Shown here piece by piece: positions 1,788-64,000 of a stretch of 64,000 nucleotides of DNA (its first letter is position 1; each line of letters begins with the position of its first letter). Both the position numbers and the translations under genes were made by a program. This DNA comes from Pavona decussata (Eukaryota), in the NCBI GenBank assembly GCA_977016875.1, contig CDRNST010000086.1, forward strand, positions 1,674,001 to 1,738,000, read 5' to 3'. The notes below the pieces were generated by a model that had not been told where the DNA came from, searched no databases, and was given only the letters and a program-made list of their open reading frames with translations.

Positions 1788-2142
1788 GGTTGTCTGAACG
1801 GTCCGTCAAAACCCGGAACCAATCAGAAGATTGTCACGTGAAGCAACGAGGAGATGGAATCGAGCTCGCGGATCACACTACCATCGCAAAATCTGTAAAC
1901 AATCTGAACAGTGTACAAACGAAAGAAAAATGTACCACAAAAAATTTTTTGAACCCAATCCTCCTCCGGAACACCGCATGGAACATTCGTTCTTCAAAAG
2001 GAGAACTGGGAACGAAGGGGTTTGTTTACATCTCTGTCTGTTTTCAATAATTTTTGACACGTTGTTCGGGTTTCCCCGTAACAGCTAGATAATCTGGAAT
2101 CTGACAATTTTTCCAGTTTCGTTTCCCCCCGGCCGTGTAGTT
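1788..2142. promoter_or_regulatory. Putative bidirectional promoter (sulfatase / LPCAT-A)
   Basis: Divergent ATGs at 1787 (-) and 2143 (+) with 355 bp between them. ETS-like CCGGAA 1813-1818, CCAAT 1819-1823, E-box TCACGTGA 1834-1841. Confidence 0.65.
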
Positions 2143-5100
2143 ATGCTCCCAATAGTCGAGGATGAAGTTAAACGTTTTTATAGTGAGCTCAGCCTGAAAG
2201 AGCCGATTGTTCGCAATCCATTCATTCATCGAGTACAAATATCGGGTTGGCAGAAGAAATTCGAGGTAAGAGAGGATGGCCCACAAATCTGTTGTATATA
2301 CTTGTTAGATCAAGTTATGACATTATCCCATTTATTTTGCCTTAAAAAAGACGGATGCAGGCATTTGTTGTCGTGCAATGAGGTCTATACGAATATTCGA
2401 ACGCAACGCCTCCCCCTAATGACAAGAAAGCGAAAATGATCTGTAAACGTTACAATGAATCTCAGTAGAAAAATATATTTCGTGTGTCAAATCGATGGAT
2501 TTTTTTTTTCTCTGATTCATTTGGTCATTTTTCCAAGGATCATCACAAATATTTTCTTAGATTTAGGTCTTGTCGATTCAATGCGCTGTATAGTATCAAT
2601 CCACTGCCCCACAAGCATCCTACGGTTTTATTAATCTCTAACAATATTAACACGTTAAATGTAGAAACTCTTACGGCTGTTTACATACACAGTCGATTAA
2701 CTTTTGTTTGCTCATGAAAGCACTGTCATTTAAAGTCAAGAGCATATTCCGTCGATTTTTCACTTTTAAGACATTTATTTATTTAAATGCGGTGATTTGC
2801 AAAACAAAACTTGAAGTTGGATTTCTGACAGTATTTTTAATTTATGATGTCGGTCTTTATAGTACCTGTTATGAAAACGCATTTTAATTATTGTTTTATC
2901 CACGCAGTCAATGCAGATTTTATTAATGCAAACATATTAGTTACATTCCATGTATACACTTGTATTTGCACATTGTATCATTCTTTTATGTTTTGTAATT
3001 GGTTTGTGATAATAATTTCCAGCAAATATCTAACTACAAATTATGGCCATTTAGCATTTTTAGCTCCGCGGTTTTCGCTTATGTGAACACAAATTGTGAA
3101 CCCCTTGGGTTGGGGGAATGTTTGTTCATTTAAAAATGACAAGAAGAGACCCTGAAGCCAATTATAATTTATATTATTAATAACGTCTATCCCAGAAAAC
3201 ACTTTGTACAAAACTAAAACTTGAAAGTCACCGTGTCTTTCTTGGCATTTCAACAAGCATCTAGTTGATATTAGATTAAAAATAGCCACCAGAATCTTAC
3301 AATCTAATTAAAATATTATAATAGATACTTGAAAAAATTCAAGTCCACCCTCGATCTTCTTCCCTGGCCAAAAGAGATCAATATAAACAAATAAATGATG
3401 TGTACATAACATATTGTACTGGTAGTTCACATTGAAAACAGTTTCTGTACATCTTCAGCAGTTACATTGCTCAGGTAGTTAACGACTGGACAAGCCATTT
3501 AAGTTAATGGCTGGATTTTTAACAGTGCCTTTAAAGGCACTGTTTCATTACCATAAATCCTGCTTATAAGTAATGGACTTATGCCAGTTCGTAAGGGGCA
3601 TAGACATTTTACTTTAAATTAGTAATAAATTATCCACCATTTATGAAAAGGTCTGTTTTGTTGTGTTTTGACAGATTGTTTTGGGCTTCATTTTTCTTCT
3701 TCCAATTCGTCTTTTGGTTGGTGTTATTCTCATCCTCTTTGCTGGAGTTTGGTGTTTTGCTATTACTGCAGGATGGAATCCACCAGACTTGAGGACTCCA
3801 CTGACTCCATGGAGAAGGTAAATAAGTAGAGTATCAGAAGACTAATCACTATGAAATGGCATTTAATTAATTAATTATTTTTTTATTTACTTATTTATTT
3901 ATTTATTGAGTTTCCTACATGTAATTCCCTCACCCCAGCCATGTGTCCTCTTCTTTTCTCTATTTACAGTAATCAACTAAAATTTTGATGTATTGTACAA
4001 AGTTTACATAAGGGCTGCTTTCTAGTAAAATCAATTGTTTTTTACATTTATATAATTTCCGTTTACAGTTATTTACTTATTATATAATAATTAATATATG
4101 AGCAAGCACTGCCAAACTTTCCAACTTAATTTCTGAAATTTATTTGGAAACATTTTAGTGTGACAGGTTAATAATAATAAAAAAATGGTTTTAATGTATA
4201 GAAAGGGTTAAAACAGCATAGTGAGTATTTACTAAATTATGTCAGTTACTCTTTTAAGTACATGTACCACCCACAACAGCTGAAAGCTTTGTTATTGTTT
4301 TTCTAATTTTTAAGAAGCTTTCTTTCTATTAAATTTGTTATGTGTTTGCGTTGTTTCATAAATGTCATCATAGTCTTAAATTTTTCAGAAGTTAAATTTT
4401 AATAAGTTTTGAGTGCTTCCGTAAGAAGAAGAGAGGGAGGTATGATTAATGAATTTTTGAAAATTTGAGAAAGCAAAATTGAGTTTGAAGAAACATACAA
4501 GTTTAAATTAATAGATGGACGTAGTTCAAAACAGTTTGTTCTTAACCTGCTGTACAGTAATGCATGGTAACTATAACTGCACACATCCTTTAAGTTTCAT
4601 TAAAAATTAGTTACCCATTGACTCCTTAAAAGCATCAGAAGCCATCATCATCATCATCATCATCATCAGTCTATGTATTAATAAAAAGCAAAACTGGGTG
4701 CAATCAGGCCTCCTAAGGGTATTTTGTTGGAACAACTTAAGAATTACTGTCTTTTACATTTATAGACACATTGACAGTACCCGAAATGTTAAACAAGGTC
4801 GTTTCATTTCATGGCTATTTTGATGGGCCTTATCTAGAATCCAGTGTACACAGTTGGGAATTGTTTTGTTCTTCAGGAAAATGAAAGATGGCATTCCTGC
4901 TATTGTCCGATTACTGCTGTTTGTCTTGGGCTTTCACAAGATCAAGATTAAAGGCAAATTGGCTTCACCATCAGAAGCTCCTTTAACTGTTATTGCCCCT
5001 CATTCTTCATTCCTTGATATATTACTGCTGTGTGAATATGGTACTGCACCTTCTGGCATTTCAAAAATGGAAAATCTGGAGAGCCGTACCCTTGGACGTA

Positions 5101-8100
5101 AGTTAAGGGGCATGCATGTAAACACTTACTAAGGATGGTCAGTTAACATGAGAATGGAATTTAGAATGTGCATCAATAAATGAATAATGATAATAATTTT
5201 ATTATTGCTATAGCGTGAAATTCATTAATAGATTATCTAATGCACTTTACAAATTGATAAAATGGAGACTAACTAATAGTACCATAATAATGATTATTAG
5301 TTAATCAATTAAGCTAACACAAACATTTACTTGCTAGAAAATCTTCTACGGCTGTGAGTTGGTGGTTTGTTTTTGTGCTTAACACTTTCACGCATTTGTT
5401 ACTATAATTATTTATCACTGATATTGATACACGTATATAAAATATATAATTAAAAGAAAATAGATGTTAATCACTGCAATGTACAAGTGAAGTGTGTGTG
5501 CAGTCTAGTGGAATGACCATAATAAAAATGAATCTGGATTCAAGGCTGTTGCCCAAGAAAAATTCAAGGAGCTCACAAGGCCGAAAGCCAAGAGGGTAGA
5601 AGCCCAGCATGTGAAGTGTTAGATGCTGCTGCAAAAAATTTGCATGCCCAGAGCATTTTCTTGGATGCCCCAGACTACTAGACTCCTGTCAGGCTGCAGC
5701 CGAGTCAGGATGGCTAATAGTGGGGAGCAATGCAAGCTAAATTGCAATACTAGCAAAGCAAGAAGACTCGTTTTTTTCCCACTCTGACGTTGTTATTCGT
5801 TTGTGTGGTGATTTTCGTTGCTCCCCACTATCTGAATGCCTGAAACAGGCCAGCTCCAACCTACAACCTTGATCATACAGCAGACCTCATGGATTATAAT
5901 TTCTTGTCTTTCAGCATTTTTTCAGTCACTTGAAGTCATTGGTGTTTCAAGAGACAATACAAAATCAAGGCAAGCAGCTGTCAAGGAACTGCAATACAGA
6001 GCAATTACAACAAAAGGGCAGTGGCCCCATATCTGCATTTTCCCTGAAGGTGCACTTTCTATTAATATGTTTATTCAGTGGTAGATTTAGGAGAAGACCC
6101 TAGGGTAAGATTGCTGTACTGGCCTTCCCCCTTCCCCCTCCCCTTCAGGAGTAGTTTTATTCTCTTGTTTAGCAAACAGAAACACCCAACAGTTCATTTT
6201 GGGATGGCCTTGATAGCCTCAGAAATTAGGATTTAATTATAAAGAAAACCTAGTGCACTTTTCTTCAGCGAAGTGTCAACTCAAAACTTGACATAACACT
6301 GAAAAACTAGTTCCTTTTGATTTTGAAGGGGAAAATATGACATTTAAAATGTGGAAAAAAGCATTTTCATAAAACCATCAACAGCTAGTAAATTTGGAGA
6401 ATAAATGTGTTTACGTACGCATTAGTAGCCAGGCTGTAGCTAGTGCTACTGAAACGTGTTATAAGAAGATACAAAGGGACAACAATATTGTATTTTAAAA
6501 ATTTATTTTCAGGTACTTGCACAAATAGAAAAAGCTTAATATCATTTAAACCTGGTGAGTTATAAGCTGTATGTTTCAGATAATTTGTGTTGGTTGGCAT
6601 TTTTAGTTTGTTTTCCATGGCCAGTGTACACATACTTCCTGGTGGATGTATCCATTTGTATTTGACTGTACATGTGCATTAAGCCATTTATCAGGATGTT
6701 TGCTATTGCTTCAAATATATATATTTTTTTCAGCTTAATGCTTGCTTTACAGTTGTATTGTGTTGTGATTTTAATTTTGGTTTTGGTTAAGAACTTTTTA
6801 AAACCAGTTTAACCCTTTCAGGACGACCCCTGCAAATATCGTACAAATTCGTACAATGACGTAAAATGTGTCTATAGCAATGCGTTTTTGTGTACCGGTT
6901 CTGAAAATACCCTGGGTTTTCCCTTTAGGCCCCGCCAATCATTGTCTCACCCTTTGTTTGTCCTCTTTTGCCATTGGCTGCGGTATGGTTTTAAATCCTT
7001 TGTTCCTGAAAATGGTGATGAATTTCAGGCACTGAAGGAAAATAAAAATCTAACTGGTTCCAAAAACAAAAGTCAACCAAAGCTAGTAGCAATGAGCTTG
7101 AATTAATATACTACTAATCCTGTTTTGCACTCTGTAGGAGCCTTTATACCAGGATGTCCAGTTCAACCAGTGTGCCTCCGTTTTCCTGGTCAACCTGTAA
7201 GTACCATTTGTTTTTAAAAATGCAACTTTATTGGGTATTTAAACTATAAAAATTAATGAAAAAGAAAAAAATTATTATGAACCCAAGAGGGTAGACCACG
7301 AATGGGACACAAGGGCCCATGTGAGCACTGCCAAATTGTTAAGTTAAAACTATAATAATTATAACATTCAGCCAGAGGTGAATGTTGAGCTTTGTGTAGA
7401 GTGGGGCCCATGCAGATTGAAAATGTTTGAATATTTAATTTAAAGTGTTTGGCCCTTATGTTCGCCTTGGATCTGCCACTGATTATTGATAGCAAGACTA
7501 TATAAGACCCTGTTTATGTGGTCTCTGGACCATAATATTATAAACATATAGACTTTTAAAAAGTTTGAAACTATAGTCAGCATCTAAATTTATTATTAGA
7601 CTTTTTTTTTAATTTCTTAATAATGTTGTTCAGTTGGTTGATAATAATGTCATGCAGACTTAAATTGTCATTTTGTTTTCCCAGGATATTTATTCTTGGA
7701 CATGGGATGGCCCTGGAACGTAAGCATTATTAAATAAATAAATATGTTCTGGTTAAAAAATTGAAAAACTATCTTGACTAACTGTTTCACTGCAAGTGAC
7801 TTATTAACTTATTATTTTTTTAGGCTATTATTGACTGTTCTTCTTCTATGCATGCTGAATAATGTAGCTGAAATAGAGGTAAGCTTATTATTATTACTAA
7901 GTTTTCATTTATTCCATCAAACTTAAGATAAGAACCTATGGTCAAGGTTTTAAGTTAGATTAACAAAGTATTCGTCACAAGTGGAGGTTAGGTGCCATAA
8001 GGGGGAGGGGTGGGAGGGGAAAATGCAATCAATGAACAAACAGCTAACTGGTTCAATGCCATGCATGAAAGTACGCTGTAATACAAGCTTGATGCAATGC

Positions 8101-59583: not shown

Positions 59584-62500
59584 ATAAGTATTTTTGTTGT
59601 TGTTGTTGTTGTTGTTGTTATCCAGTTTTATAGGTTTAATCTTGACTATGTTAAAATGTGCATTCCATGATAACGGTTTTGGTTTTCTTCGATTTCGCTT
59701 GGCGTCACTTGCAAGCCGTCCTTAATCTTGACCAGGCAGGCACACCGATAGACGTAAATGACACTCCGCATTCACCAAAACATTTAAATCCTGGAATCTG
59801 TGGTGGGAATTACGATTCGCGTCCTACCATCAAAGTGAAGTGTTAACAGCCAACTCTGCGGGAGAAGTAGTGATGTTTGCTGCGGACTCGATTAACGCAG
59901 CACATGACGTGGTTTACGGATGGATCCTCAGTTGCAAAGAGATCAGAAGAACGGTTCTCTAAATAATAAAACATACTGGAAACGTGCAGCCCGTGGGCTG
60001 CCTAAAGTCTCTTCGTTTGGCTACAGGAATCACCAGCAAATCTCATGTGACAGCCTCAAGCGTGATGCACAACAGCAGGTTTTCCTTTAAGAGTTTCAAT
60101 AAAAAAGAGTGTTTTTGCTCAATCTTGGGTTGATTCAGGTGCATGGCCAAATTCTTGTTCATAGTTTTAATTGGATGTTCTTTGCTCGTGAGAACAGTGA
60201 CTAAAAAATTTCCTTGTGGCATACAAAAACGACAACAAAACAGACAGAACAATAAAACAGAGCTAAAACATGCTGTTGTGCATCACGTTGAAAGCTACGT
60301 ATACACGATGGAGTAGGTAAAGGAAAGAATAGCAAACTAGAGACGCTTTCCATTTGTCCGAACTGGCCGGCCGAAGACTGGTTATTGCGCTGAATAAAAG
60401 CACGATTTTCAGGAAATGGCTCCTGTGCTACACCTTCAAGCTCCTTCAAATTGGGGTAAACCATTTCCAAAATGTGCATTTTGAAGAATCTTTTCAAAAT
60501 TTCTCGTTCTATTTTCAAACTGATTGGCCAAGCTGGTGCTTTCTGGCAAATGGAAAGCACTCTCAGTAGTACACAAGGAAAAATCAGCGCTTTAACAACA
60601 ATAAAGAAGATTGGGAAGAAAGAGTACTCGGAGATATTAGAGACGGGAGCCGCGAACGTTTGAAATTGGCGATGAGGAACTATTTTGGTGTTAGAAATTT
60701 TCTGGCGAACTATTTTGTGGACAAAAAACATTTGGTAGGGACCTCCATCTAGGGCTTTATGCAGAAAATTATGAACCCTTTTCCGTTAAGTACTGGGAAG
60801 TTGCACGTTTTAGGGATTCATTTTTAGTACGTTTGCAACAAGCCACCCGTCACTAATATACCTGAGTACCCAGTCAAGAGCAGCCAACATTGCTCCATGG
60901 TGACCCATACTAGATATTGTTCACCCTACAATATGGGTACCCATGGACCAATATTGGTATATAAGGGTACGCATGGACAAAATATTGACCAATATAGGTA
61001 CCCATGATCGAATAATATTGGTCAATATAGGCACCCATGGAAAAGTATTGGCCAATATGGGTAGCCATACACCAATATTGGCCAATATAGGTACCCAGGA
61101 AGCAATATTGGCCAATATGGGTAGCCATATACCAATATTGGCCAATATAGGTAACCAAAGACCAATATTGGCCAATACGGGTACCCAAGGACCAATATTG
61201 TCCAATATGGGCACCCAGGCACCAATATTGGCCAATATGGGTACCCAGGGTCCAACATTGGCCAATATGAGTATCCATGCAACAATATTGGTCCAATATG
61301 GGTACCTATTGACCAATATTGGCCAATATTGGTCACCAGCTACCCATATTGGCCAATATTGGTCCCAAGGACCCATACTGGCTAATCTGGGTACCTAGGG
61401 ACCTATACTGGCCAATATGGATACCCAGGGACTCATACTGGCCAAAATTGGTCCCTGGTCACCCATTTTGGCCAATACTAGTGCCCAGGGACCCATATTG
61501 GCCAATATGGGTACCCATGGACCAATATTTGCCACCAGGTACCCATATTGGCTAATATTGTTTCCTGGCACCCATATTGGCCAATATTGGTCCCTGGGTA
61601 ACCATAATTGCCTATATTGGTACCCAGGGACCCATATTGGCTAACATGGGTACCTAGGGACCCATACTGGCCAATATGGCTACCCAGCGACCCATGCATG
61701 CCAATGTTGGTACCCATGGACCAACATTGGCCAACATGGGTGCCCAGGGACCAATGTTGGCCAATATGGGTACCCAAGGACCAATATTGGCCAATATTGT
61801 TGCATGGACACCCATGTTGGCCAATATTGGTCCATGGGTACCCATGTTGGCCAATATTGGTGCCTGGGTACCCATATTGGACAATATTGGTCCATAGGTA
61901 CCTATATTGGCCAATATAGGTCCCTGGGTACTCATATTGGCCAATATTGGTCTTTAATTACCTATATTGGGCAATATTGGTATATGGCTAACCATATTGG
62001 CCAATATTGCTTCCTGGGTACTAATATTGACCAGTATTGGTTTATGGCTACCCATATTGGCCAATACTTTTCCATGGGTGCCTATATTGACCAATAGTAG
62101 TTCATGGGTACCTATATTGGTCCATGCGTACCCTTATATGCCAATATTGGTCCATGGGTACCCATATTGTAGGGTTGACAATTGCGAGTATTGGTCACCA
62201 TGGAGTAATGTTGGCTGCTCTTGACTGGGTACTCGGGTATATTAGTGACGGGTGGCTCGTTGCAAACGTACTAAAAGTGAATCCCCAAAACGTGCAACTT
62301 CGCAGTACTTAACGGAAAATGGTTCATAATTTTCTGCATAAAGCCCTAGATACAGGTCCCTACCAAATTTTTTTTGTCCACAAAATAGTTTGCCAGAAAA
62401 TTCTAACACCAAAATAGTTCTCTATCGCCAATTTCAAACTCCTATGAAGATCTCCGCGGCTCCCCGTCACTAATATCTCCGAGCACTCTTTCTTCCCAAT

Positions 62501-63495
62501 CTTTTATTGTTATTAAAGCGCTGATTTTTCATTGTACTAGAGTACTTTCCATTTGCCAGAACGTACCAGCTTGGCCAATCAGTTTGAAATAGAACGAGAA
62601 AGTTTGAAGAGTTAGCTCTAAAGATTCTTCATAATGCAGAATTTGGAAATGGTTTGCCCCAATTTGAAGGAGCTTGAAGGTGTAGCACAGGAGCCATTTC
62701 TTGAAAATCGTGCTTTTATTCAGCGGAATAACCAGCCAGTTCGGACAAATGGAAAGCGCCTCTAGTTTGCCATTTTTTCCTGTACCTACTCCATAGTATA
62801 TTCCGTCTTTTCAACGTGATGCACAACAGCATGTTTTAGCTCTGTTTTGTTGTCGTTTTTGTATGCCACAAGGAAATTTTTTAGTCACTTTTCTCACGAG
62901 CAAAGAACATCCAATTAAAACTATGAACAAGAATTTGGCCATGCACTTGAATCAGCATAAGATCGAACAAACGCACACTTTTTCATTGAAACTGTTCAGT
63001 AAAGGAAAAGCTGCCGTTGTGCATCACGCTCGAGGCTTTCACATGAGATGTGCTGGCGATTCCTGTAGACAAACGAAAAGACCTGAGGCAGCCCACGGGC
63101 TGCACGTTTCCAGTATGTTTTATTATTTAAAGAACTGTCCTTCTGTTCTCTTTGCAACTGAGGATTCAACCGGGAACCACGTCATGTGCCGCGTTAATCG
63201 AGCCCGCAGCAAGCATCATAACTGCTCCCGCAGAGTTGGCCGTTAACGTAGGACGCGAATCATGTAATTCCACCACAGATTCCGTGGATTAAATCTTTTG
63301 ATGCAGAGTGTCATTTACGTCTACCGGTGTGCCTGCCTGATCAAGAATAAGGACGGCTTGCAAGTGACGCCAAGCGAAATCGACGAGAGCCAAGAAAACC
63401 AAGACCGTTAGCCTGCAATGTACATTGTAACATACTCAAGATTAAGCTATAAAACTGGATAACAACAACAGCAACAACAACAAAAAAATACTTAT
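59584..63495. repeat. ~3.9-kb imperfect palindrome (foldback-like); arms ~59584-61300 and ~61770-63495
   Basis: Arms are reverse complements throughout, e.g. TTGGCGTCACTTGCAAGCCGTCCTTA (~59699) / TAAGGACGGCTTGCAAGTGACGCCAA (~63348) and TTCTTGTTCATAGTTTTAATTGGATGTTCTTTGCTCGTGAGAA (~60152) / its complement (~62892). Outer ends are the GTT and AAC tracts. Confidence 0.93.
60925..62170. repeat. Self-palindromic 30-bp minisatellite (with ~20-bp variants) at the palindrome centre
   Basis: Consensus GGTACCCATATTGGCCAATATTGGTCCCTG. It gives 10-aa repeats in every frame of the ORF track, and its orientation flips across the centre. Confidence 0.93.
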
Positions 63496-64000
63496 CTTTC
63501 TTTGATATATTGAATCACGGAAGGTGAACGCGATGGATTCACTGGTGCCTTTCAACTTTGCGAATTGAACAGCACTCATTTTCGTTCATAAACCAAGATC
63601 TGAGTTAACCGTCAATCTGAATGAATAACTTTTCAAACTCGAATACTGGTAAATGTGAATATATTATGTGCTACAAACTTCATGGTTCGTGCATTCCGAC
63701 ACGCCATGCAGGCTAATTTGCCTTTTTATTGATACTGCTACGTCGAACAATTAGTGTGAACAAAGTTTGTCAAATGATTAGTAATAATTTGGTAACCTTT
63801 ACAAAGGAAACTTATGGAATGACAGGTATGATTAGGGTTGATTGAAAGAAACGAAAAAACAAAAGGCGACAAGTGAACACAAAAGAAACGACCCCATTGA
63901 TAACGAAAAGCATGGTGTATACGAATGTGCTTTTATACGGGCTTTTTTCCCGCTACCCTGTTTTAATTCAGTAAAGTGGCGCTCAATGTATACTCTTCCC

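Follow-up and report, generated by a model that had tools for sequence, protein, structure and literature searches.

A diverged 3.9-kb palindrome in the coral Pavona decussata as the probable inner part of a truncated foldback-like DNA transposon

A 64,000-nt stretch of the genome of the coral Pavona decussata (GenBank assembly GCA_977016875.1, contig CDRNST010000086.1, positions 1,674,001 to 1,738,000 of the forward strand; hereafter the window) carries, close to its right edge, a diverged palindrome at 59584-63495 with a 30-bp quasi-palindromic satellite at its axis. The original prediction, made from the window alone, read this structure either as a Foldback-type mobile unit or as a snap-back inverted duplication primed in the satellite. 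Comparison with the window's own 602-Mb assembly shows a multi-copy family with conserved termini and 7-bp target-site duplications, which lacks coding capacity and has moved as a unit, and of which the window holds a truncated copy. The palindrome is therefore very probably the inner part of a truncated, non-autonomous class II DNA transposon of the long-inverted-repeat, foldback-like type.

The palindrome is defined by comparison of region 59400-63700 with its own reverse complement. Blastn returned a single alignment, of 59584..63495 onto 63495..59584, which spans 4052 columns at 84.4% identity with gaps counted (E = 0) and bears out the predicted 3.9-kb span exactly. A repeat finder applied to the palindrome region returned mirrored gap-free blocks at 90-93%. 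The inner unique arms, each of 1.35 kb, lie on either side of a 1.24-kb satellite array. On the forward strand, the left arm occupies 59584..60928; its mirror, the right arm, occupies 62170..63495 on the reverse strand and continues on that strand as an outer part (63496..64000), which homology with other copies carries beyond the window edge. Global alignment of the left arm with the reverse complement of the right gives 92.9% identity over aligned bases, with 91 substitutions (49 transitions and 42 transversions) and 26 indel events, so that the arms are diverged by many substitutions and small indels, as had been proposed. The extra minisatellite unit claimed for the right arm is not clear, as in the global alignment it is the left side that is longer, by 14 bases near 60976-61010.

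The search for further copies with the same arms, which the original prediction called for, places this palindrome in a dispersed family. From 121 first-look candidates, at least 45 places elsewhere in the assembly match the left arm, and many of these form inverted pairs on other contigs, with 2.5-4.5 kb between the members. When the sequence just outside the arm start was compared among 30 copies, nearly all, the right arm of the window included, shared an outward continuation that spans the whole 1500 bp compared. The left arm of the window instead joins unrelated DNA at 59584. On the right, the arm runs 2184 bp past 63495 to a terminus at G000:C86:1739679 (window-equivalent 65679); genome matches to the DNA right of the window (L031) end sharply at L031:1679-1681, and nothing beyond is repeated. 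The 3.9 kb first taken as the full unit is thus only part of it. Nor does the repeat end at the GTT/AAC tracts, as had been proposed, since homology with other copies goes on outward past them. The (TTG)n microsatellite at 59594..59619 on the forward strand ((TTG)8.7 by Tandem Repeats Finder (TRF), with its mirror at ~63457-63483) recurs at the equivalent place in the arms of nearly all other copies, where homology goes on beyond it, and is an internal feature of the arm, not an end of the element.

The true ends are defined by a conserved terminus that reads inward as CACAGGCAGCCC... and, at both ends of intact relatives, as 5'-CACAGGCAGCCCAAGC...; the form ...GGGCTGCCTGTG stands at both ends of two-ended copies, and the right-side terminus, ...GATATTGAGCTTGGGCTGCCTGTG, is followed by unrelated flanks in every copy. 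The 31-nt terminus occurs at 207 genome sites with at most two mismatches, 55 of them exact, against none for the reversed control. Plus/minus pairs of termini on one contig delimit elements of 256, 282, 360, 442 and 610 bp, in the size range of MITEs (miniature transposable elements with inverted repeats), together with elements of ~1.3 kb, a common class of ~2.2-2.3 kb, and others of 3.1, 5.6, 6.6, 8.3 and 10.5 kb. Intact relatives of ~5.6-11 kb run from the terminus through a 1.5-2.2-kb outer arm and the 1.35-kb inner arm into the mirrored satellite of 30-bp units, beyond which the second arm follows. The outermost 566 bp at the two ends of copy C79 are inverted-identical at 93.8%. Across the 602-Mb genome, the palindrome is present in some 60-75 copies of the family, and about 200 termini can be recognised. 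A segment with short inverted ends within the left arm (60345..60560, forward strand) had been interpreted as a fragment of another MITE. No independent copies of it were found: a genome search gave 91 first-look candidates, compared with the 121 of the entire arm, and all 40 that were scored lie in arms of the family.

Evidence for transposition comes from the flanks. Both flanks were read for 22 two-ended copies, and 17 of these carry a 7-bp target-site duplication (15 perfect and two at 6/7), every one different in sequence. Four of the duplication-bearing copies hold the whole palindrome: C79 (TCTTCAT), C129 (ACTAATA), C230 (GTTAGGA) and C26 (CTTTCTC / CTTTCTT, 6/7). The open reading frames (ORFs) of the arms, outer arm and satellite gave no Pfam domain above threshold, and a 5.6-kb relative (L046) has no internal ORF of 120 aa or more; the foldback element is non-coding. 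The family thus combines conserved inverted termini, a duplication of fixed length within unrelated flanks and the absence of an internal transposase gene, as is expected of a non-autonomous class II element with terminal inverted repeats. Together with the multi-copy status, these features support the mobile-unit alternative of the original prediction. Mechanistically, a transposase acting in trans would make a 7-bp staggered cut in the target and would cut and paste the whole palindrome as a single unit; the same termini would also mobilise the 2.2-kb elements and the 256-610-bp MITEs.

At 59584, the window copy is broken. The neighbouring DNA outside the foldback element (58850..59583, forward strand) is the 3' remnant of a Penelope-like retroelement. 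At least 40 other genomic copies of it match from window position 59200 on, at 85-96%, with stop points at 59547 or 59582-59591. What meets at the junction is therefore the 3' end of a retroelement and an internal position of the arm, and these stop points uphold the report of a retroelement remnant against the left end. A frameshifted GIY-YIG-like motif can be read by eye at 59060-59330, and a Pfam search of the retroelement ORFs left of the break gave no match. Other A arms reach the CACAGG terminus ~1520-1575 bp further out, and no outer-arm homology was found in window positions 1-59583. It follows that the left outer arm (~1.5 kb) and its terminus have been lost, which makes the window copy an immobile fossil whose own target-site duplication is no longer visible. 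Insertion of the retroelement with loss of target DNA may have removed the outer A arm. Elsewhere in the assembly (G000:C89:1978952-2080117), the Penelope-like 3' region recurs on one contig at ~7233-bp and ~5350-bp spacings, a regularity that suggests tandem arrays of a larger unit containing it. Within the remnant of the window, a G+C-rich 63-bp tandem repeat lies at 58584-58755 (2.7 copies, 93% matches).

The central array of 30-bp units occupies 60929..62169 (TRF), and its two consensus units are mutual reverse complements. Unit orientation calls divide it into a forward block (60929-61323), a mixed-orientation centre (61324-61791) and a reverse block (61792-62169), the units running in order as 12 forward, nine mixed, six forward and 13 reverse. 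Over the outer ~390 bp of the array, unit-specific variants are mirrored (80-94% per 90 columns), as had been reported. The central ~450 bp consist of more of the same satellite, again as proposed, in the form of a patchwork of units with no clean mirror. A genome search with 331 bp of the array gave 74 candidate loci, and the scored matches map to contigs and coordinates that also bear arm or segment matches of the family; judged by these matches, the satellite is a component of the foldback family. In other A/B copies, the orthologous satellite register matches at 89-91%, against 78-85% for shifted registers. The mirrored variants are therefore present but do not mark local history, since they are a family-level trait inherited by every copy. 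In each of seven copies merged from overlapping loci, a forward and a reverse block enclose a variable centre, in arrays of 1.17-2.28 kb and 38-74 units. Because the centre varies among them, the axis is the most unstable part of the element, and its turnover may be driven by hairpin formation or slippage. An Rfam search of window 58000-64000 (E <= 0.1) returned 18 sub-threshold matches to unrelated microRNA precursor families at 61046-61941, with 26-37 bits against gathering scores of 70-128. MicroRNA genes in the satellite were rejected accordingly: the matches are generic hairpins of a quasi-palindromic satellite, far under the gathering scores.

The history of the two arms is resolved by a maximum-likelihood tree of 31 arms. 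The left arm of the window falls in clade A (support 100/100) and the right arm in clade B (100/99). All five copies of this lineage with both arms sampled (the window, C195a, C79, C104 and C195b) combine an A arm with a B arm. Kimura two-parameter (K2P) distances are 0.059 between A arms and 0.052 between B arms; A-to-B distances are 0.081-0.098 within a copy (0.088 in the window) and 0.094 between copies. Among 107 arm-to-arm substitutions in the window, 45 are A/B differences common to other copies; of the rest, 30 are peculiar to the left arm and 25 to the right, with seven unassigned. Read from this partition, the 45 shared differences are inherited, not acquired in place. The pairing and the shared differences indicate that the master element already had unlike arms and that the whole palindrome was copied as a unit. 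Since insertion, the window copy has gained only ~2% divergence per arm, with no arm-to-arm homogenisation. The divergence, which the original prediction took as a sign of age, is accordingly not simply the age of a local inversion, 45 of the 107 differences being shared with other copies. In other lineages (C318 and C93a), the two arms of a single copy are sisters (100/100), at K2P distances of 0.052 and 0.033, consistent with similar arms at the time of insertion.

Two explanations would place the origin of the palindrome at the locus itself or in its assembly. A local snap-back inverted duplication, primed in the palindromic satellite long ago and diverged in place, gains some plausibility from the self-complementary satellite at the axis, and such an event may well explain the palindromic ancestor of the family, which would have arisen by inverted duplication at that satellite. 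As a local event it is rejected and must be given a very slight chance: other contigs bear the same architecture and A/B pairing together with target-site duplications, 45 of the 107 arm substitutions recur in other copies, and the right arm leads into a transposon terminus. An assembly artefact, in which two haplotypes or copies were mis-joined through the satellite, would be a known failure of assemblers at satellite-centred palindromes, and public reads do not span the locus. Public runs that contain parts of the stretch are labelled coral or coral metagenome, and they offer only ~100-nt, highly repeated unitigs that cross no junction. Nonetheless, the seven merged copies on different contigs share one arm-satellite-arm layout, matching 7-bp duplications flank four palindrome-bearing copies on both sides, and the 26 indels between the arms follow the A/B clades. 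Mis-assembly of the palindrome is very unlikely, and its chance is smaller still than that of the snap-back.

Several observations do weigh against the transposon interpretation. Five of the 22 two-ended copies have no target-site duplication. One of them is the 10.5-kb A/B copy C195 (ends at G000:C195:2453613 and 2464159; L053, L034), outside which the 20-bp flanks are exact inverted repeats of each other. No autonomous copy with foldback termini was found. The P-transposase RNase H domain (PF21787) has 27 matches in the genome, and all nine P-like loci examined (L048, L049, L073-L075 and L078-L081) lack CACAGG termini and similarity to the foldback element. There is also a second lineage, in which the same palindromic module has an unpaired, different end and no detectable duplication, and which bears on a composite origin. 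Copies of this lineage 2 (L018, L020, L025 and L028) share an AAAGAGG... boundary on one side, ~970 bp out from the arm, past which their flanks are unrelated. The other side, seen in L050, L076 and L077, stops ~613-670 bp outside the arm without a duplication, and no partner ends were found at the predicted positions in L051 and L052. The composite origin takes its form from the ~2.2-kb elements. In these, a left inverted repeat of ~690 bp leads straight into what makes up the outer 1.5 kb of the B arm, and A arms carry the same terminal repeat (~670 bp) after a different stretch of ~250 bp. The large element thus resembles a 2.2-kb element in which a ~5-kb palindrome separates the left repeat from the interior. 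It is possible, if rather doubtful, that the palindromic module, made up of the inner arms, the satellite and ~690 bp to either side, is or was a separate mobile unit with non-inverted ends of its own. It would have landed between the left inverted repeat and the interior of a 2.2-kb element with CACAGG termini, which have carried it ever since. The continuity of the short family across the insertion point, the similar heptamers TCATACC and TGATACC at the two composite junctions and the boundary shared by lineage-2 copies with unrelated flanks speak for such nesting. Against it, lineage-2 ends number just 11 genome-wide and are never paired, the opposite end sits elsewhere, at a position that is not complementary, with no duplication seen, the final ~130 bp of the lineage-2 end are missing from the composite, and the short family could equally stem from deletion of the palindrome out of the composite. 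A more radical version, in which the module is itself mobile or self-renewing, with a single strand folding back at the axial satellite and templating the opposite arm so as to regenerate or homogenise palindromes, is improbable. The sister arms of C318 and C93a and the presence of the module in two end contexts, one of them with non-inverted ends and without a duplication, would point to such hairpin-templated propagation, with later capture by a P-like element, in place of cut-and-paste as the sole mechanism.

Two details accompany these copies. A 73-bp fragment of the terminus lies 317 bp upstream of copy C195. The boundary sequence of lineage 2 reads AAAGAGGTATTTATTT... at oriented positions ~526-581.

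Returning to the non-autonomous transposon, its superfamily may be approached through the length of its duplication, an assignment that draws on general knowledge of the lengths found in each superfamily. The observed 7 bp fall within the 7-8 bp of the P superfamily and outside the 8-10 bp set for FB-type foldback elements, a figure that comes from Tetris, FB itself duplicating ~9 bp. The inverted repeats of Drosophila FB consist mainly of tandem repeats, whereas the arms here are unique sequence with tandem repeats only at the axis. The fixed 7-bp duplication and the CA-initial ends agree best with the P superfamily, so that the family may be placed there as a Galileo-like member, an assignment with roughly an even chance of being correct. 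Two complete P elements of the coral genome allow a direct comparison. C58 (L075:755-8351, ~7.6 kb) has 32-bp inverted ends beginning CATGG..., a 7-bp duplication (CAATTCT) and an ORF with TNP-like RNase H and GTP-binding domains in Pfam. C66 (L078:761-7116, ~6.4 kb), a putative P element from its PF21787 genome match, has 48-bp inverted ends beginning CATAG... and the duplication ATACCAC. P elements of this coral thus share 7-bp duplications and a CAyrG start, and the foldback element likewise starts with CACAG.

None of the candidates for an autonomous partner was retained. C58 and C66 were rejected since their termini differ from those of the foldback element, and the non-coding L046 was likewise dismissed. 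The 8.3-kb member L045 (G000:C164:630900-639450) has the same termini and a perfect 7-bp duplication, GTTTTAG. Its interior, at ~1900-6650, holds a nested insert with long inverted ends that carry identical 91-aa ORFs (1913-2188 on the minus strand and 6356-6631 on the plus strand). The insert also contains an ORF of 423 aa, in which a Walker-A motif and a weak match to the Pox_A32 packaging ATPase are present, and it looks like a piece of a Polinton/Maverick element. As that match is weak and not to a transposase, L045 was rejected as an autonomous member.

Galileo, a member of the P superfamily in Drosophila, combines long inverted repeats of foldback type with 7-bp duplications, and some of its copies are two repeats that lack a middle (PMC3573991). 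The likeness extends to very long inverted repeats with tandem repeats, CA-start ends, the abundance of two-repeat copies and the occurrence of some copies whose arms derive from different phylogenetic groups (PMC3573991; PMC3688188). Differences are equally evident. The foldback element has no linked P transposase found with it, its termini are unrelated in sequence to those of the two coral P elements, its tandem repeats lie at the axis and not inside each repeat, its arms are much longer, at about 3-3.5 kb, and its host is a coral. Moreover, its A/B arms occur in copies with intact duplications, which indicates that the unlike arms were inherited from the master and did not come from ectopic recombination. 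Tetris produces 8-10-bp duplications, and most foldback elements have been placed in Mutator (PMC4079207). With FB and Tetris, the family shares the foldback architecture, non-coding copies, the association of transposon and satellite and a variable centre (PMC4079207), but their inverted repeats are largely tandem repeats, whereas here most of the arm sequence is unique, satellite units occur solely at the axis and the duplication is 7 bp. As in MITE families, a shared 31-nt terminus bounds elements of 256, 282, 360, 442 and 610 bp, besides the 2.2-kb elements and the large palindromes, most of them with 7-bp duplications. Unlike a MITE, the window element is 20-40 times longer and almost wholly palindromic. 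A literature search on coral foldback elements returned nothing specific.

Among other features of the locus, the window contains a 661-aa ORF at 53744-55729 on the forward strand, which has no Pfam match at E <= 0.01, and a strong positive GC and AT skew at 54001-56000. Fragments of the foldback family occur in a coral metatranscriptome library, where DNA carry-over is possible, so that transcription of the locus or of a hairpin cannot be judged from them.

Taken together, the 3.9-kb palindrome is an ordinary kind of repeat and not a rearrangement specific to this locus. Although the kind of element is known, some of its features are of modest interest: an almost wholly palindromic body of several kilobases, an axial quasi-palindromic satellite with a fast-changing centre, unlike arms that are stably inherited and termini shared with MITEs. 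An apparently unique, old palindrome thereby becomes an annotated repeat family, which is useful for repeat masking and helps explain assembly breaks. Copies of the family flag places where hairpin RNA, cruciforms and ectopic recombination are liable to arise, as shown with Galileo in Drosophila. The variable centre of the array offers a natural series for studies of palindromic satellite turnover, and the stable inheritance of two unlike arms indicates that mobilising a palindrome of several kilobases needs no near-perfect identity between its arms.

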